Part shown: piece by piece, positions 6,856 to 57,149 of the stretch
Layout of the letters: each line of letters starts with the position of its first letter
How positions within the stretch are numbered: position 1 is the stretch's first letter
Translations under genes and position numbers: made by a program
NCBI GenBank assembly: GCA_002269645.1
Contig: NIVC01001620.1
Span: 1-64,000 of the forward strand
Reading direction: 5' to 3'
From: Macrostomum lignano
Lineage: Eukaryota
Length of the DNA stretch: 64,000 bases
The notes under the pieces: model-generated
What the model was told of the DNA's origin: nothing
The model's input: only the letters and a program-made list of their open reading frames with translations
Database searches by the model: none

Positions 6856-7789
6856 CCTCTTGTACGATCCTTCAAGACAACTGTCCCTATAAAATATTGA
6901 TCATTTCCATGGCAACCGAGCAAAAACAAAATCGCTTTGAATGAGTTACCAAAGTACTTTTCCTGCAGCTAAAAGAACTAAAAAACCTGCATAGAAAAAA
7001 CTGTCAAAAACTGAAACGCAGCACTATTTGAACAACAACAAATTGATACTTTTTTGGCAAAACCATTCGCGTAAACAACAACAGATAACCTGCAAGCATA
7101 GAACTACAGAGCAGCAAAATCCAATGCAATAGAAAATATAGACATTACTTTAATAACAAAATTAAGCATTGACAGCGAAGCAATCCTGGCGCCAAAGATT
7201 GGCTGATAATTGACTCGCGCAAGCCGAAAGCAGAAACCAGACAGACTTCAGACGGGCAAAAAACACAAACAACAAAAGCAGCAAATGTACGAGCAAGCAC
7301 ATTTCAAAGCAGCGTGGGGCACAACCAGGAGTGAAATAATTTTTAAAGAGAATTTAGTTTAAGAAATATTTTCAGAAACAAATAAAATTACAGTTTACGT
7401 AAGATAATAAACAAAAGTAGGTACAAAAACACGACAAAATCAAATATTGTTGAAATACAAAGCACACTACTAGCCGCCTGGCATTGAGCTAGTAGTAGTC
7501 GGAGAAATAGTAGTGGCAGCCGTGAATCACGTCCATCGAGGGACGGCAGTAGCAGCGAACCGGCGAATCGGACGTGTAGCCGCTGAAAATTTCAATTTTG
7601 TCAGGCATTAAATAGTGTGTACTCTTGATTTCACTTGATTACTCTTGATGGACTTTTGACTTCTTTTAAAGTAATCTAGGAGTTCAATGCTTAAGAGTAT
7701 ACAGAGATAATATCGAGGATAACTACAAGCTAATACAAGATATCGGGTTCTGCGAGTGTTAGTTACACAATTGAGGGATCTGAGAGTGT

Positions 7790-8570
7790 TGGGGACTCAA
7801 TCAGTGGGATCTGGGACTTTTGGGGGACTCAGTGGGATCTGAGACTTTTGGGGGACTCAGTGGGATCTGGGACTTATGGGGGACTCAGTAGGATCTGAAG
7901 ATGCTGGGGACTCAATCAGTGGGATCTGGATGTATTGGGGACTCAATCAGTGGGATCTGGATGCATTGGGGACTCAATCAGTGGGATCTGGATGTATTGG
8001 GGACTCAATTAGTGGGATCTGGATGTATTGGGGACTCAATTAGTGGGATCTGGATGTATTGGGGACTCAATTAGTGGGATCTGGATGTATTGGGGACTCA
8101 ATTAGTGGGATCTGGATGTATTGGGGACTCAATTAGTGGGATCTGGATGTATTGGGGACTCAATTAGTGGGATCTGGATGTATTGGGGACTCAATTAGTG
8201 GGATCTGGATGTATTGGGGACTCAATTAGTGGGATCTGGATGTATTGGGGACTCAATCAGTGGGATCTGGATGTATTGGGGACTCAATTAGTGGGATCTG
8301 GATGTATTGGGGACTCAATTAGTGGGATCTGGATGTATTGGGGACTCAATTAGTGGGATCTGGATGTATTGGGGACTCAATTAGTGGGATCTGGATGTAT
8401 TGGGGACTCAATTAGTGGGATCTGGATGTATTGGGGACTCAATTAGTGGGATCTGGATGTATTGGGGACTCAATTAGTGGGATCTGGATACATTGGGGAC
8501 TCAATCAGTGGGATCTGGGATCTAGGACTTTTGGGGACTCAATCAGTGGGATCTGAAAGTGCTTGGGACT
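7790..8570. repeat. 31-bp minisatellite (GGGGACTCAATTAGTGGGATCTGGATGTATT), about 25 copies with degenerate edges
   Basis: Directly visible tandem units, homogeneous in the centre. Confidence 0.97.
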
Positions 8571-8668
8571 CAATTGATCTGATGCGGGAGTGTCGCAGCC
8601 CAAGACGCGCATTAAACGCATACAGCAAGCTGAGAGGACAAACTTAGCATTGCGTATTAGATATGTTT

Positions 8669-19254: not shown

Positions 19255-19964
19255 TTAACCCTAACCTAGACCCAACCTAAACCCTAACTCTAGCTCTAAC
19301 CTAGACCCAACCTAAACCCTAACTCTAGCTCTAACCTAAACCCAACCTAAACCCTAACTCTAGCTCTAACCTAGACCCAACCTAAACCCTAACTCTAGCT
19401 CTAATCTAGACCCAACCTAAACCCTAACTCTAGCTCTAACCTAGACCCAACCTAAACTCTAACTCTAGCTCTAACCTAGACCCAACCTAAACCCTAACTC
19501 TAGCTCTAACCTAGACCCAACCTAAACCCTAGCTCTAGCTCTAACCTAGACCCAACCTAAACCCTAACTCTAGCTCTAACCTAGACCCAACCTAATTACT
19601 AACTCTAGCTCTAACCTAGACCCAACCTAAACTCTAGCTCTAACCTAGACCCAACCTAAACCCTAGCTCTAGCTCTAACCTAGACCCAACCTAAACCCTA
19701 ACTCTAGCTCTAACCTAGACCCAACCTAAACCCTAACTCTAGCTCTAACCTAGACCCAACCTAAACCCTAACTCTAGCTCTAACCTAGACCCAACCTAAA
19801 CCCTAACTCTAGCTCTAACCTAGACCCAACCTAAACCCTAACTCTAGCTCTAACCTAGACCCAACCTAAACCCTAACTCTAGCTCTAACCTAGACCCAAC
19901 CTAAACCCTAACTCTAGCTCTAACCTAGACCCAACCTAAACCCTAACTCTCGCTCTAACCTAGA
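19255..19964. repeat. 35-bp minisatellite built from telomere-like hexamers (AACCTAGACCCAACCTAAACCCTAACTCTAGCTCT), about 20 copies
   Basis: Visible tandem units; each contains CCCTAA plus variants CTCTAG, CTCTAA and CCTAGA. Confidence 0.95.
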
Positions 19965-21085: not shown

Positions 21086-24000
21086 TCACTTCATTCTGGC
21101 GTCGTTAGCCTTAGTAATCTCTTTAGTCAGCTCCTCCTTATAGGAGAAGATGTCGCCTTCCCACTTGGTCACTTTGCAATTGTTGCACTCCCAGATTTCC
21201 TCTGCCACCTGTTGAATGAGTCGGAAATCGTGACTGACCAACAGCAGGCCGCCCTGGAACTCGCAGATGGCCTCGGCCAGAGCGTCGATAGTCTCGATGT
21301 CCAAGTGGTTGGTCGGCTCGTCCAGCAGCAGCATGTGCGGCGATTTGTTGGCCAGCCAGGCAAAGATAATTCGGCATCGCTGTCCGTCGGACAGTGTCCG
21401 AATCGGGCACACCTGCTGGGCCCCAGTTAGTCCGTATCGGCCGAGTATTTTGCGCATCTCGTCCCGTTCCGTAATCTCGGGAAACTGGCGCATCATCCAA
21501 TCTAGCGAGGTCAGCGATATGTCCAGCATCTCGTGCAGGTGCTGATGATAGCGACCGATTCTAACGTGCGAGTGCCGCCTGATGAGGCCGTCAGTTGGCT
21601 GCAGCTCGCCGGCGATCAGCTTCAGCAGAGTGCTCTTGCCTGAATTGCAGCAGCGCGTTAAGTTTAAATATAATTTTTTAAGCTACTGTTAGTAGCTGAT
21701 TTGATTATTGCATTATTTAAATAGAGTATTATAGAGTTTGCTGGTAAAGGCATGTTCTTCGGGGAGTAGATTTCTGAGAATAGTAAACTTCAAATATGAG
21801 CTAACCTCTATGGATTGGATCTATGTCCATAGGGATTGATTTTTATAGGGATATAGATTTGTCCATAGGGATATAGATTTGGCTCTAGAGATATAGATTT
21901 GTCTTTGAGGATACAGCTTTCTCTCTAGGGGCATAAATGTGTTTCTATGGATATAAAGTTGTCTCTAGGGTCATAGACTTGTCTCTAGAGATATAGATTT
22001 ATCTCTAGAGATATACGAGGGGTGTCCAAAAAGTCGGTGCACTTTCTTCACCACAGCCTTTTTTGACCGATCAGAAATACTAAGTCTGTTGCAGTTGAAA
22101 AGAGAATTATCTGGCCGTTAAAATGACTTTCTGTTTATTTCTGCATCTGCTGGCATTCTTGAGATATGAGCACTTTTCTGCCCCACCCCCTGTGCTACTT
22201 TTACAAATTGCCATAGACCAAAGCTTACGTGATGCACGAAACAACGAAACATTCAACCGATCAAAAAAACATCCGCAACATGAAAGTTGAGGAAAGAACA
22301 GTCAAAAGTTAATCATCAACATTGTCCTGAGGCTTCTCCACATAGTCACCACTGCGCTGCACACTTCTGCCATCGGCTGTGCATGTCGACAACGCACGTC
22401 CCACATGGCCAAGAAAACGGAGGAGACGATCGAGCAGGCAAATTTTGTGCTGCACTCACTGCCACCCTACTCTCCGGATTTGTCAACAGCTGACTTTGCC
22501 TTCTTTCCAAAGAGGAAGAAGCTGCTGCATGGAAAAATCTTTGCTTGTCGTGGGAGCCTGGAAGCATTGACTCGCCAAGTTCTCCTTCATGAGATGCCGC
22601 GCTCAGATTTTGCTGATTGACGACATTGACGACATGCACAGCCGATGGCAGAAGTGTGCAGCGCAGTGGTGACTATGTGGAGAAGCCTCAGGACAATGTT
22701 GATGATTAACTTTTGACTGTTCTTTCCTCAACTTTCATGTTGCGGATGTTTTGTTGATTTATTGATTGTTTCGTTGTTTCGTGCATCAGGTACAAAGCTT
22801 TGGTCTATGGCAATTTGTAAAAGTAGCACAGGGGGTGGGGCAGAAAAGTGCTCATATCTCAAGAATGCCAGCAGATGCAGAAATAAACAGAAAGTCATTT
22901 TAACGGCCAGATAGTTCTCTTTTCCACTGCAACGGACTTAATATTTCTGATCGGCCAGAAAAGGCTGTTGTGAAGAAAGTGCACCGACTTTTGGGACACT
23001 CCTCTTAGATGTGTCTATATATGTCTATAGATATAGGGTTTTATCTCTAGGGATATAGATTAGTTTACGAGGATAGAGATCATACATAAGAGTCCAGACT
23101 CAATAACACGCATATTATTATAAAGCATAAAAAATCCGAATCAATAAAAAAGCACACTCACCAGCTCCATTTGGACCAACCAGAGCCACTCGGGTGTCCA
23201 GATCCACGCCAAAGTCCAGATCTTTATAGATAAAAGGCTTGCCAGGCGCGTACTGGAAGCTGACATTCTGAATCATAATCACTGGCGGCGGAATCTCGCC
23301 ACAGTCGGGAAAGTAGAACGTGACAGTTTTGTCGTGAGCAACCCGGTCTGTCAGGCCTTTGTCAACCATCTTAGCCAGGGTTTTCTCTTTGCTCTGGGCC
23401 TGCCTAGCCAGCTTAGCCGAGCCGTGGCCAAACCTGGCTATGTAATTGCGCATGTTGGATATCTGGCCCTGCTCCCATTTGAATCGCTTCATCTGGTTCT
23501 CCTCCATCTCCATGCGAGTCTGCATGTACTGATCAAAATTGCCGCCATAGTAGATCAGGCGCTTGTGCCGCATATGGATGATATTAGTGCAGACGCCGTT
23601 GAGAAAGTCCTGAGAATGGCTGATGATGACAAGGATTCGCTTGTACTGCTTCAGCTCCTCCTCAAGCCAGACGCAGGCGTTCAGATCCAGATGGTTGGTG
23701 GGCTCGTCCAGCATCAGCAGGTCTGGCTTCACGAACAGAGCCCTGGCCAGGGAGATGCGCATGCGCCAGCCGCCGCTGAAGTGCTTTACCTAGCAGGTTG
23801 GGGTGCAGAGCTCCGTGAACCCCAAACCGTGCAGAAGCTAATCATGCTACTAACAGTAGGGAAATGGCATACTATACAGATTATTTACCTGTTTGTTCTG
23901 CATCTCGGCCGTGAACCCCAGACCGTGCAGAAGCTAATCATGCTACTATCAGTAGGGAAATGGCATACTATACAGATTATTTACCTGCTTATTCTGCATC

Positions 24001-25508
24001 TCGGCCGTGCAGAAGCTAATCATGCTACTATCAGTAGGGAAATGGCATACTATACAGATTATTTACCTGCTTATTCTGCATCTCGGCCGTGCAGAAGCTA
24101 ATCATGCTACTATCAGTAGGGAAATGGCATACTATACAGATTATTTACCTGCTTATTCTGCATCTCGGCCGTGCAGAAGCTAATCATGCTACTAACAGTA
24201 GGGAAATGGCATACTATACAGATTATTTACCTGCTTATTCTGCATCTCGGCCGTGCAGAAGCTAATCATGCTACTAACAGTAGGGAAATGGCATACTATA
24301 CAGATTATTTACCTGCTTATTCTGCATCTCGGCCGTGCAGAAGCTAATCATGCTACTATCAGTAGGGAAATGGCATACTATACAGATTATTTACCTGCTT
24401 ATTCTGCATCTCGGCCGTGCAGAAGCTAATCATGCTACTATCAGTAGGGAAATGGCATACTATACAGATTATTTACCTGCTTATTCTGCATCTCGGCCGT
24501 GCAGAAGCTAATCATGCTACTATCAGTAGGGAAATGGCATACTATACAGATTATTTACCTGCTTATTCTGCATCTCGGCCGTGCAGAAGCTAATCATGCT
24601 ACTAACAGTAGGGAAATGGCATACTATACAGATTATTTACCTGCTTATTCTGCATCTCGGCCGTGCAGAAGCTAATCATACTACTATCAGTAGGGAAATG
24701 GCATACTATACAGATTATTTACCTGTTTGTTCTGCATCTCGGCCGTGAACCCCAGACCGTGCAGAAGCTCCGCAGCCCTGGTGGCGGCCTTGTCAGCGTC
24801 TAATTCTTCCAGCCGATCGTAGATGTCCATCAGGCGATCGTGAGATTCCTGATCTTCGTGCAGAGCCAGAGCCTCGGCCTCGGTCTCCAGCCTGACGCGC
24901 TCCTCGTCAACTTCCATGACGCACTGTATCGCAGTTTTGTCAGACGGCGGCATCTCGCGTTGCAACAGGAAAATGTCCACATGCGGCTGAATCTGCAGCT
25001 CCCGGTTGGCCAGCGCGGCCAGCAGGGTGCTCTTGCCGCAGCCGTTCAGGCCAATCAGGCCGTAGCGCCGGCCGCAGTTCAGCTCCAGCTTGGTGTCCTG
25101 CAGCAGCTCCTGGCCGTGGAAGGTGATGCTCAAATTAATTAGCTGAATATCGCGAGCGTCCGGGTGGCTGGCTAATACGCTGGTGCAGGCCCGATGCGCC
25201 ACCACCCGGTCAGACAGCAGGTTGAGAGTCTCAATCTCGCTGGCCAGAGCGCTTGGCATGTCGTCATCTGAGCCCATGAAATCTTCGTCCTTGTCGGCCG
25301 AGGCGGAGGCAGCGGCGGCGCCATTGTCCGAGGAGGCGCCAACAGTTTCAGTTCCGTTAGGCCCAGTCTCCGGCACTTCATCGCCTGCCGCGCTGCCAGC
25401 TTCATCTTCATTGTCGCGCTGCTGCTGTTGCAACGGTTTCTTAGCGTCCTTGCGCTTGGCGGCGTCCTTTTTAGCTTGGGCTCGCTTCTTCTTGTGATCG
25501 GATGGCAT
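21086..25508 (-). CDS. ABCF2: ABC-F family ATPase ABCF2, 655 aa (exons 25508-24723, 23789-23162, 21639-21086)
   Basis: [14 protein letters not shown] start; two NBDs (GLNGCGKST / FSGGWRMR / [12 protein letters not shown] and GPNGAGKST / LSDGQRCR / [11 protein letters not shown]). All junctions are GT-AG and in phase (1968 nt). Confidence 0.97.
22016..23005. mobile_element. Mariner-derived fold-back element in ABCF2 intron 2
   Basis: TA flanks at 22014-22015 and 23006-23007. Arms of about 375 bp (22016-22390 and about 22628-23005) are reverse complements. The centre encodes a mariner C-terminal fragment ([18 protein letters not shown]...RWQKC...GDYVEK). Confidence 0.92.
23805..24722 (-). repeat. 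82-bp minisatellite filling ABCF2 intron 1; each unit contains the exon-1 3' end plus the 5' splice site
   Basis: Units start at 23831, 23927, 24009, 24091 ... 24665. The minus-strand unit reads ACGGCCGAGATGCAGAATAAGCAG|GTAAATAATCTG... Confidence 0.97.
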
Positions 25509-27209: not shown

Positions 27210-28635
27210 AAAATGAATGAGAGAACAAACATTAACTTGTTTTTATTTACTTTAATTCAATTGCCAATGCATTTCAACCCTTGTAGGTCATTGTCAGGGC
27301 AGTAGTGAAATTGAAAATTCTAATAAACAGTTGAATAAATATACCTATGATAAGTTGAATACACAATATAAATTATTGTACGTAGCTTTCAATCAAAACA
27401 AGTTAACACACGGTGTAGTAGCGTACACTCCAAGCTAAAATACGCTGAGTTGGTGGCTGGCACCTCCCATAGCTAGCTGGCAGTTTAGGCTTGGGTTCTG
27501 ATCTTTGACGTACATAGCCTCTAAGATATTCAAAGCGTGCTCATGGCGGCAAGAATCGATAATCTTAAATAAATCAATTGGTTTGCTGTTACAGCATGAG
27601 TTGCATGTGAGAAGGTGCTCCTGTACAGCAGATCTTTTGGTCTAGTGCTCCTTGACCCTAGTGTACAAGTGTCGCTTAGTTTTTCCTATGTACGAAATAC
27701 TCTGGTCGCCAGAGCATTGAAATTTATAAATGACACCTGCATTGAGAGGCCGAGGGACATGGGACTTCAAGTTGCAGACATACTGGGACACCTTCTCTGT
27801 GCAGAATGTGATCCTAAGCTAAACATTGAGGCTTTTTTGAACAGTTTTTCAACTTTCTTCTTAAACTCAATAGAGCATAGGCCAAAAAATGGCAACACAA
27901 TTGTAGGGCTATTCGTTTCTCTAGCATTATACTCCTGAGTGCTCTGTTGATTAGTCAGCTTGTTATTTAAAAACTGGTTCACAATGCGAGACACATAGTT
28001 CCTAGGGTAACCATTCCCAATGAGATGGCCAGTAAGCTGTTCCACCTCATCATGAAACAGTTTCTAGGAGCTACAGATCAGAAAAGCTCTATGCAGAAAG
28101 CAGCGAATCAGGCCATTCTTTCATTGCCATGGGCAGAGGGCATCAAATCTCAGCATAAGGCCGGTGAAGCTGGGCTTCCTAAAGACTTTAGTTTTGATCA
28201 GGTCATTGCTGATATCAATCTCCATGTCAAGAAAAGGGAGTTTAGTTCCTCCACCTTTGGTCGTGAATTTGATGTTAGGATGGGTATGATTGATAGCATG
28301 GAAAAATTCTTCTTTTTCTTATCATTCTCAAAGATGGCAAAAGTGTCATCAACGTAGCATTTGTAAAACCGAGGCGAACACAGGAGGGCCATCCAGTCTT
28401 TTTCCCAATGGGCCATGCAAAGATTAGCCAGGGTGGGGGCAAGAGGGCTGCCCATGGCACAACCATCAATTTGCTTATAGTACCTATACCCGAACAGAAA
28501 GATACCAGAGGTGGCAAACCCGAGCATCTTTTTAAAGATGGTTTTCAGAAAAGGTAGATAATCATGGTCGAAATGCATTGGCAATTGAATTAAAGTAAAT
28601 AAAAATGAGTTAATGTTTGTTCTCTCATTCATTTT
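27210..28635 (-). mobile_element. Penelope-like retroelement A (5'-truncated RT + GIY-YIG, defective), bracketed by a 66-bp inverted pLTR segment
   Basis: RT motifs QIDGCAMGSPLAPTLAN and FYKCYVDDTF; endonuclease GVIYKFQC...YIGKTKRHLYTRVKEH ending at 27435. 27210-27275 is the reverse complement of 28570-28635. Confidence 0.93.
27263..27300 (-). ncRNA. Minimal type-I hammerhead ribozyme motif (CpG-decayed) in the PLE A pLTR
   Basis: The minus strand reads GCC CTGACAA T GACC TACAAG GGTT GAAA TGCATT GGC. Reverting CpG transitions gives GCC CTGACGA T GACC-loop-GGTC GAAA CGCGTC GGC, with stems I and II and a palindromic stem III. Confidence 0.75.
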
Positions 28636-29418
28636 AGATCTTATAAGTCTTTTACTTTTTATTGATTTTGTCAAAAAGCAAAAATTATCTATAGGGCCTA
28701 ATGTATTAATAATTGTCAAATAGTTATATACTTTGCAACTTGCCCTTGGTCTGCCATAATAATGATATATGTGCAATACCTACTTAGTTGACTTAGATGA
28801 TCTAGCTAGGTAACAGGATTACTAATACAAGTATGTTGCAAAACTAATCCACTAAGCACCAAAATTATTATGCATATACAAGACAAAAGCATTGAGAAAC
28901 AAAATAAACAAGAGAAAAAAGGACTTATGCTTATTATAAAAAGTGAATGCAAAATAAAAAATGGATATATTATAGTGACATTGTATAAGGGAATTGCAAA
29001 AAGATAAGAAAGAAATAGTTTCAATGAGAAAATAAATGATACACCTTAAAAAGGGTTGCTTAACATGGAATAAATTTTTAGGGCCTATAAACCCCATGGA
29101 TGTTCACCTCAACTATAATCAGCTTTTATAATATAGTTGTTAAGCCTATACTAAATATAAGAGATAGACCACTACACATACCATTCCACCAAGATTGCCA
29201 CACTTGGAAGTGCTAAGGGAGAAATTTGGCTTGATTTGTTATTAGATAGTGCTGGAAAGGAGATAAATGGATAGGAGAGCTAGCAGGACAAGGCTATGAG
29301 AAAGGAACCTATGAAAGGAATGGCAATGATAGAAGATTGGTAGCTCCCCCTCAATACTAGTAGCCAGTAGCTATGGGGGTATGGTGGTCTTAGTATAGGG
29401 GGGCCTATAGCAGTTTAT

Positions 29419-41477: not shown

Positions 41478-42292
41478 TTGTATCCTGTGAGGACGATGCT
41501 GTGTCAGACAGACCTCGGTCTGGTATCCTGTGAGGACGATGCTGTGTCAGACAGACCTCGTCTGGTATCCTGTGAGGACGATGCTGTGTCAGACAGACCT
41601 CAGTCTGGTATCCTGTGAGGACGATGCTGTGTCAGACAGACCTCAGTCTGGTATCCTGTGAGGACGATGCTGTGTCAGACAGACCTCAGTCTGGTATCCT
41701 GTGAGGACGATGCTGTGTCAGACAGACCTCAGTCTGGTATCCTGTGAGGACGATGCTGTGTCAGACAGACCTCAGTCTGGTATCCTGTGAGGACGATGCT
41801 GTGTCAGACAGACCTCAGTCTGGTATCCTGTGAGGACGATGCTGTGTCAGACAGACCTCAGTCTGGTATCCTGTGAGGACGATGCTGTGTCAGACAGACC
41901 TCAGTCTGGTATCCTGTGAGGACGATGCTGTGTCAGACAGACCTCAGTCTGGTATCCTGTGAGGACGATGCTGTGTCAGACAGACCTCAGTCTGGTATCC
42001 TGTGAGGACGATGCTGTGTCAGACAGACCTCGGTCTGGTATCCTGTGAGGACGATGCTGTGTCAGACAGACCTCGGTCTGGTATCCTGTGAGGACGATGC
42101 TGTGTCAGACAGACCTCAGTCTGGTATCCTGTGAGGACGATGCTGTGTCAGACAGACCTCAGTCTGGTATCCTGTGAGGACGATGCTGTGTCAGACAGAC
42201 CTCAGTCTGGTATCCTGTGAGGACGATGCTGTGTCAGACAGACCTCAGTCTGGTATCCTGTGAGGACGATGCTGTGTCAGACAGAACTCAGT
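41478..42292. repeat. 43-bp minisatellite (TGGTATCCTGTGAGGACGATGCTGTGTCAGACAGACCTCAGTC), about 19 copies
   Basis: Directly visible tandem units. Confidence 0.97.
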
Positions 42293-42788: not shown

Positions 42789-45700
42789 ATGTCGTCGAAG
42801 GGATTGATCTTTGGCCTGCTGCTCCAGCTGCTCCTTCTGTGCAGCAGCTGCTTCGGCGCAGGGCAGCAGCGGCAGACTCCTGAGCTGAACCAAGCAGCAA
42901 TTCGAGCTGTCCTCGAAGCCGCCATGCGCTGTCAGAACCTGCCGCAGGTGCACACAGCCGTGGTACACGCAGGCATTCACCTTTACAGCTTCCGGCTGCA
43001 GCTGCACTCGAACGGTTCGGTGACTGACATCCCGAGGACTCCGTGCTGCTGCCGCTGGCCTCAATCAGCAAGGGAATGTTCTCTACAGCGCTGCCCTTCG
43101 TTCAGAAACAGCTGCAGGCCGACAGGAACGATCCCAATTTTGAGTGAGTGTCGGCTTCATGAACTAATTAAAAGTTAATTAAAATTTGGATTTTTCTCGA
43201 CTACCTATTCTCTGACGCACCTACCGATAGCCAAGCTTCTCTCAGACACATCTACCGATAGCCAAACTTATCTCAGACACATCTACCGATAGCCAAACTT
43301 ATCTCAGACACATCTACCGATAGCCAAACTTATCTCAGACACATCTACCGATAGCCAAACTTATCTCAGACACATCTACCGATAGCCAAACTTATCTCAG
43401 ACACATCTACCGATAGCCAAACTTATCTCAGACACATCTACCGATAGCCAAACTTATCTCAGACACATCTACCGATAGCCAAACTTATCTCAGACACATC
43501 TACCGATAGCCAAACTTATCTCAGACACATCTACCGATAGCCAAACTTATCTCAGACACATCTACCGATAGCCAAGCTTCGCTAAGACAAACCTACTGTA
43601 AATATAGACCGATTGTAATATTACTCAACTTTAAATAAACTTAAATGAGAGTAAAGTATTCAAATCTATACATTCAATACTCCAAATTCGCAGTCTCCTG
43701 ACAACCCCCATCAAGCAGCTGCTTGGTGACAGCGACTTCTGGTTCTTAGATCACGTGCGCACCGACGAGGTGACAATCGAGGACCTGACCAGCCACACAA
43801 CGGGTCTAAGCAGGCACGACGCTCTGTCCCTCTGGTCCGGCATCAAGACAAAGGCGGAGCTCGCTGAACTCACCGGGCGGTTTAACGCTACGGGCACTTT
43901 CAGAGGCTCGTTCATCTACAATAACCTGGTGTGGACCATCGCGGATCTGACTGTTGAACGCCTCACTGGCATGAATTTCACGGCCTATATGCGCAAGTTT
44001 CTGTGGCAACCGCTGGGCATGAACGGCGCGGTTGGCAGCTCTGAGGTGGACGCGCGCGGCCTGGTCGCCAAGCTGTTCCGGTCGTCGAAGCACTTCGGCT
44101 CAGGACCGGTGCCATTTGAACGCACCGATTTGGAGAGGTTGGAGTCGATATTTTTACAACTTTCCGCTGTATTGTTGACAAACACGCTCAGAGGGGTTCA
44201 TTATGTATAACCCTGCACTTGGAATTAGACTGCTGATGACCTTAATTGTGCGTTTCAAACACCGTCTACCGAACAGTAGCAAGAAAAGAATGAAGTGAAT
44301 CCCTCATAGTGTTTAAAAAAATCGCACTGATAATGAAGTAGAAATTTTAACGTGTATCCACAAGGTTTGAAGACCAATTCACCCGGTCCATAATCTCGTT
44401 ATGCACGTTACGTCACAGTTTTACTGGCTGTTCTGTTTTTCCTTTCAGAACCTTGGACATTGTGGAGGCCGCAGGTGGCATCTACGCTCCACTAGGCGAC
44501 ATGGTGAAGTACATGCAGCACCACACCGCCGCAAACTATTCGAGTTTCCTGCCGCCGCCGCCGCCATTCAAGTCTGTCAACGGGTTCAATGCTGGACCAG
44601 CGTTCGATCCGCGGCTGCTGAACTACTCGAATGTCAGGCTGGCTGACCTGCCCGACATCGACACCGAGTCCTATGGGCACGGCTGGAGCCGCCAGTGGTA
44701 CAGGGGTGAGCACTGAGGCACTGCTTTTACAGATTCCAGCAGAAACAATTTCAGATGGATCCCTACAGTTCCCTTTCAGGTTCCTTTCAGGTTCCTTTCA
44801 GGTTCCTTTCAAATCCTTTCAAATCCTTTTAGATCCCTTCAGATTCCTTCAGATCCCTTCAGCTTCCTTTAGATTCTTTAGATCCCTTCAGATCCTTTCA
44901 GCTACCTTCAGCTCTCTTCAGTTCCCTTCAGCTCTCTTCAGCTCCCTTCAACTCCGTTCAGCTCCTTTCAACTTTCAGCTTTCAGCTTTCAGCTTTCAGC
45001 TTTCAGCTTTCAGCTTCCTTTAGCTCCCTTCAGATCCCTTCAAACCCCCTTCAGATCTCTTCGGATCCCTACAGATCCCTACAGCTTCCATCTCCCACCT
45101 GCACTGCAGACAGTCTGTCCTACGAGCACTCCGGCTCCGTGTTTGACGCCAACTGCCACCTGCGGGTACTACCGAAGCGCCGCCTCTCTGTGTTCGCCCA
45201 CACCAGCCTGGGCCGGTCCGACTCGCCCTCACAGTCCGCCTACGCCAACATTGTCAGCCAGTACATCACGGACCTGCTGTTGCAGAATTCCTCATATGTA
45301 ACCCAGGAGAATGTGTGCTCGCTGCTCAGAGATAACTCTGCCGAACCGCCAATTGTTGTACCGAGACGGTTGCTGAGCCAGGCTGATTTGCAGACCTGCG
45401 TTGGAAGGTGGGCTGTTAAATTTATTGGATCAGGTGTAGAATTGTTTAAAGCTTCTTGAGTTGACTTACAGGATTTGAAGCACCATGAATTGACCTACAG
45501 TATTTTGAGCATCATGAGTTGACTCACAGGACTTGAAGCATCATGAGCTGACTCACAGGACTTGAAGCATCATGAGTTGACTCACAGGACTTGAAGCATC
45601 ATGAGTTGACTTACAGGACTTGAAGCATCATGAGTTGACTTACAGGACTTGAAGCGTCATGAGTTGACTCACAGGACTTGAAGCGTCATGAGTTGACTCA

Positions 45701-48700
45701 CAGGACTTGAAGCATCATGAGTTGACTCACAGGACTTGAAGCATCATGAGTTGACTCACAGGACTTGAAGCATCATGAGTTGACTTACAGGACTTGAAGC
45801 GTCATGAGTTGACTCACAGGACTTGAAGCATCATGAGTTGACTCACAGGACTTGAAGCATCATGAGTTGACTTACAGGACTTGAAGCGTCATGAGTTGAC
45901 TCACAGGACTTGAAGCATCATGAGTTGACTTACAGGACTTGAAGCGTCATGAGTTGACTCACAGGACTTGAAGCGTCATGAGTTGACTCACAGGACTTGA
46001 AGCATCGTGAGTTGACTCACAGGACTTGAAACATCATGAGTTGACTTACAGGACTTGAAGCATCATGAGTTGACTTACAGGACTTGAAGCGTCATGAGTT
46101 GACTCACAGGACTTGAAGCACCATGAGTTGACTTACAGGACTTGAAGCGTCATGAGTTGATAAGTCTATAAACTTTCGAAACCATTTTGAGCTGAACGAA
46201 TCGCTGTAGCTGGAAATTATCTTTGTCCAGTTTTTGCTTTAAAAACAGAAAAAATGTGAATTTGTATTCTTCCAAGGTTTGCTTTCTCGGGAGGGGTGTA
46301 GCCCAGTGGTCTGGCGCGGCGCTCTGATGTACCAGCGGCCCAGGCTCGATTCCAAGTGCAAGTCACATTAATCTAAATATACTAAATCTCTAAGGTTTTC
46401 TAAATATACTAAATCTCTAAGGTTTGTATGTTTGAATGCTTGTCCATAACGCTCTAGAGACTGCAATTCTCGACCGATTTTGATCGCGTTTTCGCCAAAA
46501 GATTCGTAATCAGCCTGGGATTGTATGGTTAAAATTTCTTGTATCTGCTTCAATGCTAAAGGGATTAAATATTCGAAAAACGGTTTTAAATGGGCAAATT
46601 CAATGTATTTTTTATCAAACTGCTCGCAGCGATAGAATTCACAGCCAATTTTAATGATTGCGCCAGAGCCAACTGATCAGAAAACTCAGTGAGCCCCACT
46701 GCCCAGATAATTACTTTATTTAAATTGCGCAACCATACCAGGGGTCAAAAATAAAATTACTCTGAATGCTGGGCATATTCTAAAACTCTAATCTATGTCC
46801 ATGTAAAACGCTCTACAGACTGCAATTCTTGACCAATTTTGATCGCGTTTTCGCCAAAACATTCAAAATTGTCTGAAAAGAAGACAGTTAAAATTTCTTG
46901 TAGGTGCTTTAATGTTAAAGGTATTAAATATTCGAAAAACGAGCTTTTCGAATGCTTTTAATAAAAGGCCAAGCAAGGTTGAATTCTTGACTGGCTGAAT
47001 TTTCATTCTAATTATAATTGCGCCACAACTGCGTTCTGCATATTCTCGCTATAAACTGACTCTGAGCTTTTTAGGTGGACGCAGTGTGCCAAGAATTGCG
47101 CAAGCATTTAACTGCTCAGTGGCTGTGTGTGCATTCTTCTGACCCTGGCTGAATGGCTCCGTCAGAACCAAACCTGAGCACACTGAGCATGCCTAACACT
47201 GCTATGTATTTGACTGCAATGTCGAAGCATATATGGCTGATTTTTGCGCCCTTCCATCAGTAGGCGGAATAGCCGCAGTGTAGGCACTAGGACTAGGTTT
47301 AGGCTAGGCGTAAGGTCCCAGGTTCGAGTCCACCTACTCGGTGGATAATTAAAACAAATTAATTCATTCATTTGTAGCTTGTGACTCGACTGAATATAAC
47401 ATATTTTTTATTAATTTTAATTCCAACATTTTTTTATTAATGCAAATTAATTTTTGCTACTTGGCACAAGCCACTTACCAAATTTGATTTTAAAAAACTG
47501 CTTCGTGTATTACTGATCCCATCAATGAGTACTGCCTAGCTCCATGAAAGTATGAAATTGCTATTAAACTGCAGACTTTTCTGCTAAAATTGGTTATAAG
47601 TATTGCTAAATTTTGAGCTTTTTAAGAATGCCGATATGAATTGAAAATTGATTAGTGAGCCGTAAAATGCTGAGCACATTTTTATATTATTGGAGATGAG
47701 AACTGCAGATGCTGAGGGGAACTGCAGATTGTCGAAGCTATCATTCATGCACAGTGGATACTTGCAGGCTGCTAAGAGTATGACTGCAGTCTGTTTGCGG
47801 GATTAGAAGTGATAGCTAATTTCAGGTTGTTGTGGAGATAACTGCCGATTTCTGGGGGGAGGGGTTAACTTCAAACTGCTGAAGTTACTAAACCTCTTGA
47901 ATAGTATAAGGCTTTTAGTAGAAGGTCGGAAGCTCGAGTCTACATTGGAGCAGCGAATTTATCTTTGTGACAATAATCATTGTTTTTTATGAGGATTCAT
48001 GCCAATTTTTCACATTTTAATTTTGTAGATACTTTTGCTGGGGCTACGCTAAGCTTTAAGAGCAGCGCTAATCGGGGAGAGCAGTGCTAATCTGATGTAC
48101 AAAATAAAATAATAAATATGTAAGGGGATTACAAATCAACTTTAACCTGCAAGTTGCAAAAACATTTCCAATTGTTTCGATTATCCAGAAGAAACATGGC
48201 CATAGGCAAATATTAGTGCTGTGCTGGTGAAGCATTGCTGAAATGGTGGTGAACCATTGCTGAAATGCTGGTGAACCATTACTAAACTGCAGAAAGCTAT
48301 TGTGAATTGTATTATTTTAATACAAACTTCTTTTAGAAAGAAGAAAATGCAACGCAAGAAAAAGCGAACAAGAATCATCATGTTAATCATAAAAGAAGCG
48401 CTCTGTCGAATGTAAAAGTCTCATAGGCAATTGTGAAGACTGTTAAGATCGCTAAGACTATTGCTACGAGCACAATGCTGCTATGACAAATTGCTGTGAT
48501 ATCAAGACTCATGGGAGAATTTATAAGATCTCAAGACTCAAGGGGAATTGCTATAATTACGAGTGTATGTCATTCTGGAGAGAATTTCTTTGATTTCAAG
48601 GTTCATTTGTCAAACTTCTGGGGTATCAAGGCTCATTAAAAATGCTTTGCTGTCAAGGCCTATACGCTCGTAGAGATAACTACTGGAATGCTGTGGCTGT

Positions 48701-51700
48701 TTTCGGAATTGCCGACATTGTTAGGGTAAGAGTAAGGCGTAAACCATAAATGAATTGGCCTTTCAAACGTAAGACTCATCGAGGAATGTCATAGCTCATG
48801 GGGGATATCTGAATTATACTGTGGCTCAAGGAGCTCATGGGGGATATCTGAATTGTACTGTGGCTCAAGGAGCTCATGGGGGATATCTGAATTATACTGT
48901 GGCTCAAGGAGCTCATGGGGGATATCTGAATTATACTGTGGCTCAAGGAGCTCATGGGGGATATCTGAATTATACTGTGGCTCAAGGAGCTCATGGGGGA
49001 TATCTGAATTATACTGTGGCTCAAGGAGCTCATGGGGGATATCTGAATTATACTGTGGCTCAAGGAGCTCATGGGGGATATCTGAATTATACTGTGGCTC
49101 AAGGAGCTCATGGGGGATATCTGAATTATACTGTGGCTCAAGGAGCTCATGGGGGATATCTGAATTATACTGTGGCTCAAGGAGCTCATGGGGGATATCT
49201 GAATTATACTGTGGCTCAAGGAGCTCATGGGGGATATCTGAATTATACTGTGGCTCAAGGAGCTCATGGGGGATATCTGAATTATACTGTGGCTCAAGGA
49301 GCTCATGGGGGATATCTGAATTATACTGTGGCTCAAGGAGCTCATGGGGGATATCTGAATTATACTGTGGCTCAAGGAGCTCATGGGGGATATCTGAATT
49401 ATACTGTGGCTCAAGGAGCTCATGGGGGATATCTGAATTATACTGTGGCTCAAGGAGCTCATGGGGGATATCTGAATTATACTGTGGCTCAAGGAGCTCA
49501 TGGGGGATATCTGAATTATACTGTGGCTCAAGGAGCTCATGGGGGATATCTGAATTATACTGTGGCTCAAGGAGCTCATGGGGGATATCTGAATTATACT
49601 GTGGCTCAAGGAGCTCATGGGGGATATCTGAATTATACTGTGGCTCAAGGAGCTCATGGGGGATATCTGAATTATACTGTGGCTCAAGGAGCTCATGGGG
49701 GATATCTGAATTATACTGTGGCTCAAGGAGCTCATGGGGGATATCTGAATTATACTGTGGCTCAAGGAGCTCATGGGGGATATCTGAATTATACTGTGGC
49801 TCAAGGAGCTCATGGGGGATATCTGAATTATACTGTGGCTCAAGGAGCTCATGGGGGATATCTGAATTATACTGTGGCTCAAGGAGCTCATGGGGGATAT
49901 CTGAATTATACTGTGGCTCAAGGAGCTCATGGGGGATATCTGAATTATACTGTGGCTCAAGGAGCTCATGGGGGATATCTGAATTATACTGTGGCTCAAG
50001 GAGCTCATGGGGGATATCTGAATTATACTGTGGCTCAAGGAGCTCATGGGGGATATCTGAATTATACTGTGGCTCAAGGAGCTCATGGGGGATATCTGAA
50101 TTATACTGTGGCTCAAGGAGCTCATGGGGGATATCTGAATTATACTGTGGCTCAAGGAGCTCATGGGGGATATCTGAATTATACTGTGGCTCAAGGAGCT
50201 CATGGGGGATATCTGAATTATACTGTGGCTCAAGGAGCTCATGGGGGATATCTGAATTATACTGTGGCTCAAGGAGCTCATGGGGGATATCTGAATTATA
50301 CTGTGGCTCAAGGAGCTCATGGGGGATATCTGAATTATACTGTGGCTCAAGGAGCTCATGGGGGATATCTGAATTATACTGTGGCTCAAGGAGCTCATGG
50401 GGGATATCTGAATTATACTGTGGCTCAAGGAGCTCATGGGGGATATCTGAATTATACTGTGGCTCAAGGAGCTCATGGGGGATATCTGAATTATACTGTG
50501 GCTCAAGGAGCTCATGGGGGATATCTGAATTATACTGTGGCTCAAGGAGCTCATGGGGGATATCTGAATTATACTGTGGCTCAAGGAGCTCATGGGGGAT
50601 ATCTGAATTATACTGTGGCTCAAGGAGCTCATGGGGGATATCTGAATTATACTGTGGCTCAAGGAGCTCATGGGGGATATCTGAATTATACTGTGGCTCA
50701 AGGAGCTCATGGGGGATATCTGAATTATACTGTGGCTCAAGGCTCAACAGGAATTGCTGTGATCGCAATACATGTGAATGTGGCCAAAATTTATGGCTCA
50801 AATAGGAGTTTCTAAGATGTCAAAGCTTACGGTGGGATTCCTGTAATGCTTTAGGCTGTGACTCTGCTGAGATGCTAAGATTCACAGGGAAATGACCGGG
50901 ATTTCAAAGGCTTCTAAAGGAAATAGCTGAAATTCACTAAATGTCAAGGTTCATTAGGTAATTGCTAAAATGCAAGTGCCAAAATATCAAAAGGATAGTC
51001 GCTCAATTTTCAGGCTCATGGGGAAATTGCTAACATTTCCAAAGCTCATTGGGGAATTGCTGAAATCCGGCTGCAGGTTAAGGGTTATGGTTTTGGTTCA
51101 GTTATAGAGCGATCGTCGTGTCAATCATTAATGATTCATCGAGGAATTGCTAAGATTAAATGCTTTTGGGGCGAATTACTTAAATGCTTTGGCTCTACGA
51201 GGAGTTGCTGACAGGTCAAGGCTTTCGGTAAAATTCAGGTTACAAAGCTTATAACTGAGGAGGTTACCTTAATGCTGAGACTCAAGGCTCATGGTGGAAA
51301 TTGCTAACATGCCAAGACTTACTTCTGCGTTAGGGTTAGGGGCTTAGGTGAGTTTTGGTTCCATCTTAGATTAACGGCTGTCAACCATCAATTAAAGACT
51401 TGCTAAGATATCAAAGCTCATGGGGGAATCGCTGAGTTACAAGGCTCATAAAGAAACTGCTGAATTATCAAGGCTTATAAGGGGATTGCTGAATTCTTGG
51501 GAGAGGAGAGTCGGGTTGTTGGGATGTCAAGGCATACTGCGCTGGAAGACTTGCGTAGATGTCGAGGCTTGAGTTTAATTGCTGCGATGTCGAGGCTTAA
51601 TGAGGGAACTGCTGAGACACCAAGGCTTTCTGGAGGAATTCTGAGATTTCAAGGCTTACTGGGGAATTGCTGAATGGTTGAGATGTCAAGGCTTACTGGG

Positions 51701-54700
51701 GGGATTGCTGAGATATCAAGGCTTACTGAGGGAATTGCTGATATGTCGAGGCTTACGAGGGGAATTGCTGAGGTGTCAAGGCTTACTGGGGGGAATTGCT
51801 GAGATGTCAAGTCCTACTGGGAATGGCTAAGATTTCAATGCTTACTGGGGGAATTACTGAGATGTCAAAGCTTACACTGGGAATTGCTGAGATCTCAGAG
51901 CATACTGAGGGAATTTCTGAGATGTCAAGGCTTACTGGGGGAATTACTGAGATGTCAAAGCTTACTGGGGAATTGCTGAGATCTCAGAGCTTACGGGGCT
52001 AATTGCTGAGATCTCAAGGCTTTACTGGGGCAGTTGCTGAGATTTTAAGGCTTACTGGGGGAATTTCTGAGAGCTCAAGGCTTACTGGGGGAATTGCTGA
52101 GATCTCAGAGCTTACGGGGGAATTGCTGAGAAGTTAAGGCTTACTGGGGGAATGGCTGAGATGTCAAGGCTCATGGACGATGGCTGAATTGTTGGAGGGA
52201 GGGGGGTTAGTTTGTTAGGCGATTGTCAGATAGTCACGTTGTACAGCTCAAGTAGCTCATGTGTCATGTAATTCAGATAATGAAATAGTACACACAAGTG
52301 ATGCTGATTTCTGCTAATAGGATATACCAGTGCATTCATTAAAGCTTTGATTCTTTGATTTAGGCTAATATAGAGAGAGGGTCTAAGACCATCCAGGATT
52401 TGCATATTGAGCTCCTTCCAGTGACGATATTCAGTAATAGTTTGTGCTTGAAAGGATAAGCACTATTTGCTGATTTAGAAAGGGTTTTGGGCTGATGAAG
52501 GAAACTGTTTTGGCTGATGAAAGTTCTGATTCATGGATGTTTATTTTTGCCGAAATGAGAAAAGGTAATTTTTGATTTATGGAAAACAACATTTTGGATA
52601 CTTATAGTAAGGTTACTCTTGTGCCAAAATAAAAACCAATTGGTGTCATTTTCAAGGCTCCCCAGCGGGGGCTAAATGGCTAGTCCTATATACTAAAAAT
52701 GGTCTGTCTGTGTCTATCTATCTATCTATCTATCTATGTGATCGATTAGAGAAAAAATGGCTGGACCGATTTTGTTCGAACTTGCACTGTTCGATCAGAA
52801 ATTTTCCCGTGACGGTACATGCATCGTGGCTAAGAAATTGCTCGATGCTAAAGGCATTAAATATTCGAAAAACATGCTTTTTTGCAAAGGTCAAGCAAAC
52901 TTTTTGACTTGAAAAATGCATTGTAAGAATGCTAGAGAAAAAAATGACTGGTTGAATTCTGACTCTGAAATAGATTGCATCATAACTGAATTGTAACTCC
53001 GACTTGAATTGAAAATGCAGTGTGGAAGCGTAGCACCAGACTTGATTTAAATTGCGTAACCATATTGTTAACTGATACTGACTGACTGAGAAACTGATTA
53101 TGTCATAACTGCTTCGTGTGATTTACTCTATGCTTGGATTTAAAAGTGTTGAGTTATATAAGTGCAAAAGTTGATGTTATCAAAACGATGAGAGCTAGCC
53201 TAAAGGTGAACAAATTGAACTGCTAAATGCAGTGACGATGGTTTGAATTTTCATAGAGTATAATTTTTTTAATTAAAGCTTTTCAACGTCAGGAAAACTA
53301 AAAGACTTTTTAAAAAGAAGCGTCATGTAAAAATCATAGAAGCGTCATTTAAACAATCATAGAAGCGTCATGTAAAAATCATAGAAGCGTCATGTAAACA
53401 ATCATAGAAGCGTCATGTAAAAATCATAGAAGCGTCATGTAAACAATCATAGAAGCGTCATGTAAACAATCATAGAAGCGTCATGTAAACAATCATAGAA
53501 GCGTCATGTAAACAATCATAGAAGCGTCATGTAAACAATCATAGAAGCGTCATGTAAAAATCATAGAAGCGTCAAGAAAACAATCATAGAAGCGTCATGT
53601 AAAAATCATTGAAGCGTCATGTAAACAACCATAGAAGCGTCATATAAAACTCATAGAAGCGTCATGTAAAAAATCGTAGAAGCGTCATGTAAACAATCAT
53701 AGAAGCGTCATGTAAACAATCATAGAAGCGTCATGTAAACAAGCATAGAAGCGTCATGTAAAAATCATAGAAGCGTCATGTAAAAATCATAGAAGCGTCA
53801 AGAAAAAATCATAGAAGCCTCATTTAAAACTAATGAAAGTGTCATTTAAAAAATTAAGAAGCGTCACGGTAGAATAAAAGAAACGTCATGTCAGACATGA
53901 AGGGTTCATGTAAAAATTAAATGCAACTATAATGCTGTGCTGGGGAGAAAAACTGAGACGTCAAGGCTCACAGAGAATAACTGAGATTACGGGGGGGGGG
54001 GTTTCTGAGATGTCAAAGCAAAAGTCAGAAGCTACTTCAAAGTTCATGTACTTTACTCCATTTTTTATTGCATTCTTTGTTGGCTCGTCACGGGGGGGGG
54101 CGCTGATAGAAGAAAAGTCATGTAAAAAATAAAAGTAGCACTATGTATACATAAAGAAAAGTCATGTCGAAGTTAAAAGATTCATTTGGGAATCGCTACG
54201 ATGTCAAAGCTTGGTGGAAATCGTTATAGTGCTGTGATTCTTAAAGAAAGAATCACTAAAATGTCAAGGCTTAGGGGAGAAGAATTGCTGAGATTTCAAG
54301 GCTTTAGGTTGGGTTAAAGTTAGGTTTAGGTCAGGTGTGGGTTGAGGGTTATATTTTATCGGGTTTCAAGGTTAACAGGGGATTTTTTAGATTTCAAGGT
54401 TTATGGGGGCCATTGCTGACATGTCAAGGCTTACGGGGGGAATAGCTGAGATGTCAAGGCTCACGGGGGTATAAATGAGATATCAAGGCTAAAGTCAGAA
54501 GCTACATGTAGTTTATTGAAAACTTTTTATTACATTATTTGATGCCTCCTCAGGGGAGGGATCGCTGATAAAAAAGCGTAATGTAAAAAATAAAAGAAGC
54601 TTCATGTCGAAGTTAAGAGATTCATTTGGGAATCCCTACGATGTTGAGGCTTGCAAGGAATCGCTATAATGCTGCAGGGGCGTAGCCAGGAATTTTGTTT

Positions 54701-56420: not shown

Positions 56421-57149
56421 AGAAGTATTGAAATCTGGCTTGAACCAGAACTTAGACATGTAAAGTTATGAAAGTTTTTATATTTATTCTGAAAATTCCG
56501 CTAGTGGCAAATCGCGACAATCTTTATAGGCTACTCATAGTACTCTGATGATACTTTTAGTCAGTAATTTTTTGAAGCATTACAAAAAACGTTTTACAAT
56601 ATCAGTAGGGTCAAAATGTTGATACAAGTTAATTTATCAGAGTTCTGTTATTATTTTAGCAGTCGTTTAGTGAATATTTTGCTATTCACAATTATAAAAA
56701 TTATAAAAATCAACATTAACGCACCAATAAATTTATATTTATTCAAATCACATATTTGTTTAAGCGCAATAATTTTATACAGTGGCTTACAAGTCAAATA
56801 CACTTCATTATGTTAATGCTGCCTCCGAAGCATGCTAAAGTTTCATTAATTAATTGGCTTGCTACCAGTATAAAAGTACAGAGAGCATTAAAAAGTTAAG
56901 CTTTCAATAATTTCGAAATTCGAAAATTACTAACAAGTGAAAATCAAAATAGTAGCAATATGATTGCTTTAATAGTGTTTTAATAAAAGCAGTTGCTCCG
57001 AACAAAACTTCAACTTTGCAGGAGCTCGAAACTAAAAACCAAAAAACTTGTTCAAGTCATAAGTTAACAGCAAATATGTTGTCATAATGGTAAGATTGAT
57101 AATCAGAAACCCAGAATTTTCCTTAATTTATAGGACTGAATCTTAGTAG

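Follow-up and report, generated by a model that had tools for sequence, protein, structure and literature searches.

A minisatellite across the 5' splice site probably inflated an ancient ABCF2 intron in the flatworm Macrostomum lignano

The window analyzed here, a 64-kb stretch of the M. lignano assembly GCA_002269645.1, carries on its minus strand a gene of three coding exons whose spliced translation of 655 aa is identical to the M. lignano protein PAA65748.1. The original prediction had named this gene ABCF2, and the name is supported by several matches: apart from the 100% identity to PAA65748.1, the product is 65-75% identical to proteins named ABCF2, which are its closest relatives, and yeast Arb1 matches it over residues 126-640 (E=8.7e-168). 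Precomputed Pfam matches contain the domains of the ABCF2/Arb1 subfamily (PF00005 twice and PF12848), i.e. two ABC nucleotide-binding domains and an ABC_tran_Xtn linker with no membrane domain, which is the architecture of ABC-F ATPases. The locus name, Mlig024741, was not found mentioned in the literature. The gene is organized as follows (window coordinates; here and below a slash marks a splice junction):

24723..25508, minus strand: coding exon 1, with ATG at 25508 and the 3' end ...AAC AAA CAG (NKQ)
23790..24722, minus strand: intron 1, 933 nt, phase 0, GT...AG, between Q262 and V263
23162..23789, minus strand: coding exon 2, 628 nt, ending GPNGA-G
21640..23161, minus strand: intron 2, 1522 nt, phase 1, in a Gly codon of the second Walker A motif
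21086..21639, minus strand: coding exon 3, stop codon included

Intron 1 lies between ...AAC AAA CAG/ upstream and /GTA AAG CAC downstream. Intron 2 contains a large inverted repeat and a 20-bp minisatellite, and about 20 other tandem arrays are present in the window.

Nearly all of intron 1 is a tandem array, in which a 96-nt unit is followed by nine 82-nt units, another 96-nt unit and a partial unit of 25 nt. Tandem Repeats Finder reported a period of 82 bp, 10.1 copies and 99% matches over 23923-24747 (score 1608), and a separate repeat search found ten in-register copies at 82-bp spacing. Both searches and the layout of the units agree with the original prediction that the 933-nt intron is made almost wholly of junction-spanning units; a head-to-tail intronic array of units of about 10-100 bp, such as this one, is one of the features of junction-spanning minisatellites. 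It starts 45 nt within exon 1, ends 23 nt short of the acceptor, and it and the intron tail consist of the following parts:

23813..24767, minus strand: whole minisatellite array, 955 nt (96 + 9x82 + 96 + 25)
24672..24767, minus strand: unit 1, 96 nt, made of 45 nt of exon 1 and 51 nt of intron, with the authentic donor CAG/GTAAAT (G at 24722)
23934..24671, minus strand: units 2-10, nine 82-nt units, each equal to the 96-nt unit minus TCTGGGGTTCACGG and each with one decoy donor CAG/GTAAAT
23838..23933, minus strand: unit 11, 96 nt, full length; its decoy donor (G at 23888) precedes exon 2 by 99 nt
23813..23837, minus strand: terminal partial unit, 25 nt, CTTCTGCACGGTTTGGGGTTCACGG, a copy of exon 1 positions -45 to -21
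23790..23812, minus strand: unique 3' tail of the intron, 23 nt, AGCTCTGCACCCCAACCTGCTAG, a pyrimidine-rich tract and the acceptor AG at 23791-23790

The exon-derived portion of unit 1 is the last 45 nt of exon 1 (24767-24723). When a gap is allowed, the 82-nt unit is the 96-nt unit without 14 nt, lost between two CACGG repeats, and a unit is composed of 31 or 45 nt derived from the exon and 51 nt of intron; the earlier division into 24-38 plus 58 nt is valid as an ungapped reading. The exon-derived copies are 96-100% identical to exon 1, and neither the 51-nt part nor the 23-nt tail has any similarity to exons. In units 2-10 the exon-like part reads AATAAGCAG, replacing AACAAACAG. The inner-unit substitutions, AAT AAG versus AAC AAA, are both synonymous in the exon frame, and two are too few to interpret. 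Unit 11 shares 94/96 nt with unit 1 (positions -45 to +51, two mismatches). The sequence TTCAC inside the partial unit is a possible branch site. The 23-nt tail holds the only productive acceptor and is the same in all three copies of the gene described below. No known RNA family was found in the array (no Rfam match at E<=1). A transposon origin of the 51-nt core (an introner), for which one would expect the element dispersed at many sites with terminal repeats or target-site duplications, was also considered: in the 64-kb window and about 48 kb covering the three ABCF2 loci of M. lignano (L001-L003), the unit and its core occur in ABCF2 arrays only. A hairpin in the 3' part of the intron RNA (GGTTTGGGGT...ACCCCAACC around GAGCTC) appears in the minimum-energy fold of 3/3 copies, yet we rejected it: its stability does not exceed that of shuffled sequence (z = +0.5 to +1.4), and where the copies differ, the changes are non-compensatory.

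The first unit spans the exon-intron border, and the donor is reiterated exactly, as 11 copies of CAG/GTAAATAATCTG... with G at positions 24722, 24640, 24558, 24476, 24394, 24312, 24230, 24148, 24066, 23984 and 23888. The minus strand contains 11 mismatch-free copies of the 30-mer GTAAATAATCTGTATAGTATGCCATTTCCC, versus 0 expected from shuffles, and the decoy donors equal the authentic one from -3 to at least +30, so the predicted count of 11 CAG/GTAAAT copies is exact. Past donor 1 the frame reads GTA AAT AAT CTG TAT AGT ATG CCA TTT CCC TAC TGA, with TGA at 24689-24687. This is the in-frame stop that, according to the original prediction, any downstream donor would retain, and because of it an open frame does require the first of the 11 donors. 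A transcript spliced at a decoy would contain ...GATTAG-CTTCTG...CAG joined to GTAAAGCAC. In GenBank, 3/3 gene copies are annotated with donor 1 spliced to the acceptor, and M. lignano annotation is based on RNA-seq and a de novo transcriptome (PMC5730564); the exons of the gene copies are 99.3-99.8% identical, so the annotation of one copy may derive from transcripts of a different one. Neither the spliced 655-aa product nor the 273-aa read-through product (from ATG to the intron stop) gave a match in exact look-ups. From the RNA-based annotation and human precedents, the first donor is probably the one predominantly used.

Other ways of splicing the array were also considered. Removal of unit-wise 51-nt mini-introns (GT...TTAG) would retain 31-nt pieces reading CTT CTG CAC GGC CGA GAT GCA GAA TAA, which contain a stop and are non-productive. 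In the copy in this window only, two successive splices, from donor 1 to the AG that precedes unit 11 and from donor 11 to the acceptor, would give an in-frame duplication of 15 aa; such an isoform is possible on paper, and its internal acceptor is poor. Recursive (ratchet) splicing, or rescue splicing to the AG of CAG/GT with regeneration of the donor, is unlikely because the upstream sequence is purine-rich: the 20 nt preceding CAG/GTAAAT (CCGAGATGCAGAATAAGCAG) contain 6 pyrimidines and several AGs, which is not what is expected of ratchet sites.

The assembly contains three copies of ABCF2 on separate contigs, all of them with the array, which has 11 donors in the copy in this window (g1), 6 in g2 (L002) and 10 in g3 (L003). 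The array length is therefore variable, as had been supposed, between gene copies of one assembly. Unit 11 is missing from both g2 and g3. The inner units of g1 all have AATAAGCAG and those of g2 all have AACAAACAG, mostly also CCCAACTG; g3 is a mosaic. Judging by the unit variants, which are specific to each gene copy, this is concerted evolution. The reading frame is intact in 3/3 copies (655 aa each), and coding differences among them amount to 7-8 synonymous versus 1-2 non-synonymous codons. Codon comparison shows that the coding sequences of all three copies are selectively constrained, i.e. under purifying selection. Since the frames are intact and the differences mostly synonymous, the array is tolerated in functional genes.

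At the homologous boundary, which precedes the S of SGGW by four codons, a phase-0 intron is present in Schistosoma margrebowiei (KKE/VRH, 96 nt), and also in Dimorphilus gyrociliatus (DTK/VED, 90 nt) and Lingula anatina (HTA/VKN, 266 nt), that is, in a trematode, an annelid and a brachiopod. No intron was found at the homologous ABCF2 position in Amphiura (brittle star) and Anthonomus (beetle). By its position and phase, intron 1 is an ancient spiralian intron and not a newly born one. It is also the 1 ancient intron, of at least nine, that M. lignano ABCF2 retains. This sole retention and the presence of the array in all three copies are compatible with some function.

The explanation that we consider highly probable is that an ancient ABCF2 intron was inflated by a border-spanning minisatellite, with the decoys as a by-product, neither an adaptation nor the origin of the intron. 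Intron 1 would have started short, at about 74-99 nt, and its inflation would have been secondary, in the Macrostomum lineage. Slippage or unequal exchange may have doubled a 96-bp segment straddling the exon 1/intron 1 border, and a 14-bp deletion between the two CACGG repeats would have produced the 82-bp variant that was later amplified. As the border lies within the unit, the 5' splice site is reproduced exactly from copy to copy. The array would be spliced out as part of intron 1, and ABCF2 mRNA would arise only from the most upstream, authentic donor and the single acceptor. A stop codon with a further exon junction downstream is the usual trigger of nonsense-mediated decay. Use of a decoy would bring in a stop at codon 12 of the retained sequence, upstream of one more exon junction, and mis-spliced ABCF2 RNA would presumably be degraded. 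Copy number would drift through unequal exchange, and the units of any one gene copy would be homogenised. In M. lignano, 15% of the genome is tandem and simple repeats (PMC5730564).

A less probable alternative is that the decoys act as a rheostat, i.e. that the decoy-spliced fraction is lost to nonsense-mediated decay and the output of each gene copy varies with repeat number, either as an adaptation or as merely a measurable side effect. Decoys that match the authentic donor from -3 to at least +30, a unit 11 that equals unit 1 over 94/96 nt and donor numbers that vary by gene copy all speak for this alternative. With two identical strong 5' sites, mammalian in vitro substrates are spliced almost wholly at the intron-proximal one, the site nearest to the acceptor (Hodson et al. 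2012, PMC3413131), and the human CBS and 6-16 genes use the first two pseudo-sites besides the authentic donor (PMC1557585). Against it, the identical pseudo-sites of human F7 IVS7 are functional yet silent and, in several cell types, offer the upstream site no competition, and LMNB2 (100-bp unit) and PDGF (81-bp unit) use the authentic site only (PMC1557585). Purifying selection, moreover, persists on all three M. lignano copies. On balance we find it unlikely that the decoys are not silent and that, through transcript loss dependent on repeat number, the contributions of the copies with 6, 10 and 11 donors differ.

Far less probable is an origin of the intron within the Macrostomum lineage, through a tandem duplication that copied coding sequence across AG/GT and of which the array would be the trace. 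Both junctions do read AG/GTAAA, as the original prediction stated (CAG/GTAAAT and TAG/GTAAAG), a copy of exon 1 does lie near the 3' end of the intron and, other ancient introns having been lost in M. lignano, loss followed by re-gain at a regenerated AGGT is formally conceivable. Comparing the intron position across orthologues had been named as a check of this proposal. The distant orthologues of Schistosoma, Dimorphilus and Lingula have an intron at the identical position and in the identical phase, which refutes the intron-gain part, and the GT following the acceptor is merely a conserved Val codon (GTT, GTG or GTA in M. lignano and the three orthologues). Besides, the model expects a copy of exon 2 at the intron start and a copy of the end of exon 1 at the intron end, whereas the match to exon 2 at the intron start is limited to 5 nt (GTAAA), and the final 23 nt bear no relation to the 3' end of exon 1. 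Nor is the body of the intron duplicated exon, for its 51-nt core is non-exonic and does not resemble exon 2. Because each unit has these 51 nt of non-exonic intron sequence, the duplication copied a pre-existing junction, and the high identity of the exon-derived copies, next to 51-nt and 23-nt parts that resemble no exon, indicates that the intron arose in an event separate from the recent duplication. Least credible is that mis-assembly of noisy long reads multiplied a single unit: the PacBio/Canu assembly is of a very repeat-rich genome (PMC5730564) and the exact copy number could be one unit off, but three independent contigs have the array with differing copy numbers and internal variant patterns, the arrays (0.5-0.9 kb) are far shorter than long reads, and the units are 99% identical at a clean 82-bp spacing.

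The preferred reading, an old intron inflated by a repeat, corrects an attractive one: an intron probably lengthened five- to nine-fold by a repeat that includes its border, and not the birth of an intron caught in the act. The locus illustrates fast minisatellite turnover in the repeat-rich genome of M. lignano, and it is also a natural experiment, in which one animal has three near-identical functional copies with 6, 10 or 11 identical donors versus one acceptor. Two competing rules can be tested here, that the most upstream of identical donors wins, as in human F7, or that the one nearest to the acceptor wins, as in vitro. RNA-seq or transgenes could show whether the upstream-donor rule of F7 extends beyond vertebrates. 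If choice of the first of 11 donors over 0.9 kb is as strict in M. lignano as it is for F7 in mammals, 5'-to-3' "scanning" would be conserved across bilaterians, and such donor choice is testable by transgenes in M. lignano.

Repeat-borne splice signals are also a property of human tandem-array introns, reportedly described by Zhuo et al. in 2007, in which units bearing splice signals are said to provide many equivalent sites and to give rise to new alternatively spliced introns; in ABCF2, a pre-existing constitutive intron was apparently merely lengthened. Creation of introns by duplication across AGGT (the Rogers model) is exemplified by vertebrate ATP2A1 (Hellsten et al. 2011, PMC3265369) and potato RdRp (PMC4974935). 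These resemble ABCF2 in a tandem duplication that includes the splice junction motif and in AG/GT at both intron ends, but their introns are absent from outgroups and have a body of duplicated exon, whereas the ABCF2 intron has a non-exonic core and is shared with three other spiralian phyla. The model pre-mRNAs of Hodson et al. are like ABCF2 in having identical competing 5' sites and a single 3' site; their acceptor-nearest choice is the opposite of what productive ABCF2 splicing requires and would favor decoy 11.

The architecture itself is already known in several human genes (F7 IVS7, LMNB2, PDGF, CBS and 6-16), in which splicing is exclusively or predominantly from the most upstream donor (PMC1557585). 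The minisatellite of human F7 intron 7 is a 37-bp VNTR of 5-9 copies (Borensztajn et al. 2006, PMC1557585). As in ABCF2, its first unit lies across the exon-intron border and there is a single acceptor. Differences are the host (human versus flatworm), the unit length (37 nt versus 82/96 nt), the exon part of each unit (4 nt versus 31-45 nt) and the outcome of decoy use, as two F7 pseudo-sites are in frame whereas every ABCF2 decoy leads to a premature stop (PMC1557585). Copy number is polymorphic in F7, and in ABCF2 it varies between gene copies of one assembly. The closest in unit size and copy number to the ABCF2 array, with which they share the architecture, are LMNB2 (100 bp x 10-15) and PDGF intron 4 (81 bp x 16-18); CBS IVS13 has 15-20 repeats and intron 2 of the interferon-inducible 6-16 gene has 25 pseudo-sites, and in both, unlike in LMNB2 and PDGF, the two nearest pseudo-sites are also used constitutively (PMC1557585). 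In F7 the productive mRNA comes from the most upstream site, whose usage was measured, and, judging from its reading frame, productive ABCF2 mRNA would likewise require the most upstream site.

The minus-strand gene is, by sequence similarity, an orthologue of ABCF2. Its spliced product of 655 aa is 100% identical to PAA65748.1 (BOX15_Mlig024741g1; contig NIVC01001620.1, GCA_002269645.1), contains two ABC_tran domains and an ABC_tran_Xtn linker, and shares 65-75% identity with proteins named ABCF2 from molluscs, arthropods and flatworms, with E=8.7e-168 to yeast Arb1 and E=9.8e-130 to human ABCF1. The coding sequence comprises three exons and two introns:

25508..24723, minus strand, ABCF2 coding exon 1
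24722..23790, minus strand, ABCF2 intron 1 (933 nt, phase 0, NKQ|VKH)
23789..23162, minus strand, ABCF2 coding exon 2
21640-23161, minus strand, ABCF2 intron 2 (phase 1, interrupting the codon of the Gly that precedes Lys in the second-domain Walker A, GPNGA-G|KST)
21639..21086, minus strand, ABCF2 coding exon 3

UniRef A0A1I8FXA4 (M. lignano, 548 aa) is an older model of the same gene without several short stretches, for example GF in LLHGL--TAEMQ, just upstream of the array; these gaps look like errors of gene prediction on an error-prone assembly rather than an isoform.

Intron 1 is almost wholly a tandem array (82-bp period, 10.1 copies, 99% matches by TRF). Its units, delimited by cutting the minus-strand sequence at CTTCTGCACGG, follow one another on the minus strand in this order:

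unit 1, 96 nt: 45 nt from the end of exon 1, the donor, and 51 intronic nt
nine inner units of 82 nt each
a second 96-nt unit
a partial unit of 25 nt
a unique tail of 23 nt, with the acceptor at its end

The 82-nt unit equals the 96-nt unit minus TCTGGGGTTCACGG, the deleted stretch having lain between two copies of CACGG. There are 11 exact copies of the first 30 intron nucleotides, against none expected by chance, and 11 of 11 donors read CAG|GTAAAT, matching eight of the nine consensus positions. Read-through of donor 1, the authentic 5' splice site, reaches TGA after 11 codons, therefore use of any of the ten downstream copies (decoys) introduces a premature stop codon with another exon junction still downstream of it. 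The original prediction was thus correct in substance about the donor array, and its claim that decoy use brings in an in-frame stop is borne out. The inner units (23934-24671) have AAT AAG CAG where the exon (24723-24731) has AAC AAA CAG, two third-position substitutions that are both synonymous in the exon frame; this may be chance, or a variant that arose in a coding allele.

Besides the window copy (g1), the same assembly holds two ABCF2 copies on separate contigs, g2 (PAA48547.1) and g3 (PAA76684.1). In each of them the array sits at the matching position, with 6 donors in a 509-nt intron in g2 and 10 donors in an 837-nt intron in g3, so it is not an assembly artefact, and the proposed length variation holds between gene copies (11, 6 and 10 donors in g1, g2 and g3). 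The 3' tail and partial unit are conserved across all three, while the second 96-nt unit is found in g1 only. All inner units of g1 have AATAAGCAG, all those of g2 have AACAAACAG and most also CCCAACTG, and g3 is a mosaic of g1- and g2-type variants; such copy-specific variants are characteristic of unequal exchange and homogenisation. Exons are 99.3-99.8% identical among the copies, and in intron 2 g1 and g3 share 99.3% identity, with g2 largely different. Since the array is common to all three despite the divergent intron 2 of g2, it predates, including its 82-nt form, the split from g2. Reading frames are intact in all three copies and their differences are mostly synonymous (7-8 synonymous versus 1-2 non-synonymous codons), therefore all three look functional.

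It had also been proposed that intron 1 partly fits a birth by tandem duplication across an AG|GT site. To place introns, five orthologous proteins were mapped exactly onto their own genomic loci, the reference boundary lying directly before the Val four codons upstream of SGGW. A phase-0 intron is present at the homologous boundary in Schistosoma margrebowiei (KKE|VRH, 96 nt), Dimorphilus gyrociliatus (DTK|VED, 90 nt) and Lingula anatina (HTA|VKN, 266 nt), and by the same mapping is absent there from Amphiura filiformis and Anthonomus grandis. The intron therefore dates back at least to the ancestor shared by flatworms, annelids and brachiopods, and its gain in this way is refuted. The duplication model requires resemblance to exon 2 within the intron and to the end of exon 1 at its 3' end (PMC3265369). 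The 51-nt AT-rich intron part of each unit shows no resemblance to exon 2, nor do the final 23 intron nucleotides resemble the exon 1 end, which likewise speaks against that origin. Where the units derive from the exon, they still match it at 96-100% identity; so recent a duplication would leave the rest of a newborn intron recognisable as well, therefore the duplication copied an existing junction. In the AG|GT of the 3' junction, AG belongs to the acceptor and GT opens the conserved valine codon, and intron 1 collapsed to one unit would be 74-99 nt, like the introns of the orthologues.

Intron 2 is a better candidate than intron 1 for a lineage-specific gain, as judged from gene structures: none of the five orthologues has an intron at its position. 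In Lingula, Dimorphilus and Amphiura, the corresponding codon of the first-domain Walker A (GLNGC-G|KS) is interrupted by a phase-1 intron. Compared with the five orthologues, M. lignano ABCF2 (21086-25508) has lost eight positions common to Schistosoma and Lingula (after about aa 220, 344, 376, 446, 483, 504, 547 and 615, M. lignano numbering), seven of which also occur in the brittle star, and the array-bearing intron 1 is the sole ancient intron kept. Intron 2 contains a large inverted repeat (21985-23036; arms 21985-22392 and 22626-23036, 91-96% complementary, 233 nt apart) with a weak Tc1/mariner-type DDE_3 transposase remnant at its centre (E=6e-4, below Pfam's cut-off). The repeat appears to be absent from g2, whose intron 2 aligns with those of g1 and g3 over its last ~380 nt only, not covering it.

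Simple and tandem repeats account for 15% of the M. lignano genome, and in the DV1 line chromosomes are duplicated, 180 Mb of the assembly falling into blocks of 95% identity or more (PMC5730564). Some 20 other tandem arrays lie in the window (periods 16-45 bp, 10-86 copies, many 95-99% homogeneous), for example the minisatellites at:

7768-8575
19261-19964
41480-42292
45449-46160
48793-50742
53316-53891
57144-57697
60959-61865
62566-63947

An intronic minisatellite is therefore ordinary for this species, and the only unusual point of the ABCF2 array is that it straddles an exon border. One window array (39 bp x 50) is open in several reading frames. An ORF at 61910-62560, between two 16-bp arrays, has no Pfam match, and a minus-strand ORF at 28198-28776, upstream of ABCF2, matches reverse transcriptase (RVT_1, E=8.8e-6, YVDD motif) and is probably a retroelement remnant.

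From the anatomy of the three copies we infer that slippage or unequal exchange between short homologies would have duplicated a 96-bp stretch spanning the border (both array boundaries contain CGGAGCT and CTGCAC), that a 14-bp deletion would have given the 82-bp unit, later amplified, and that unequal exchange would shift copy number and homogenise each array. The spliceosome would take out the entire array from the first donor, which is supported indirectly. The assembly is based on long reads and its GenBank annotation on a genome-guided transcriptome (RNA-seq and de novo assembly; PMC5730564); this annotation, being RNA-based, and the constraint on the reading frames show that mRNA joining donor 1 to the acceptor is made. 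An exact-product look-up returned no transcript contigs for ABCF2 products. Transcripts spliced from decoys would be targeted for nonsense-mediated decay. A 3' RNA hairpin was dropped as a feature, its stability being no better than that of shuffled sequence. No Rfam matches were found within the array, no dispersed copies of the unit in the window and the three M. lignano ABCF2 loci, and no mention of the locus in the literature.

Exactly the same junction-spanning architecture is known from minisatellites of the human F7, LMNB2, PDGF, CBS and 6-16 genes. In F7 intron 7 the 37-bp unit is present in 5-9 copies, the first spanning the exon 7/IVS7 border, and the identical pseudo-sites are functional, yet several cell types splice from the most upstream site alone (Borensztajn et al. 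2006, PMC1557585). The authentic site alone is also used in LMNB2 (100 bp x 10-15) and PDGF (81 bp x 16-18), while in CBS and 6-16 the two nearest pseudo-sites are used too (PMC1557585). In vitro, by contrast, substrates with two identical strong 5' sites are spliced almost entirely at the one closest to the acceptor (PMC3413131). The interest of the ABCF2 locus is modest and lies chiefly in a natural test of choice among identical 5' splice sites: its array is an invertebrate junction-spanning intronic minisatellite, of a kind already known from human genes.
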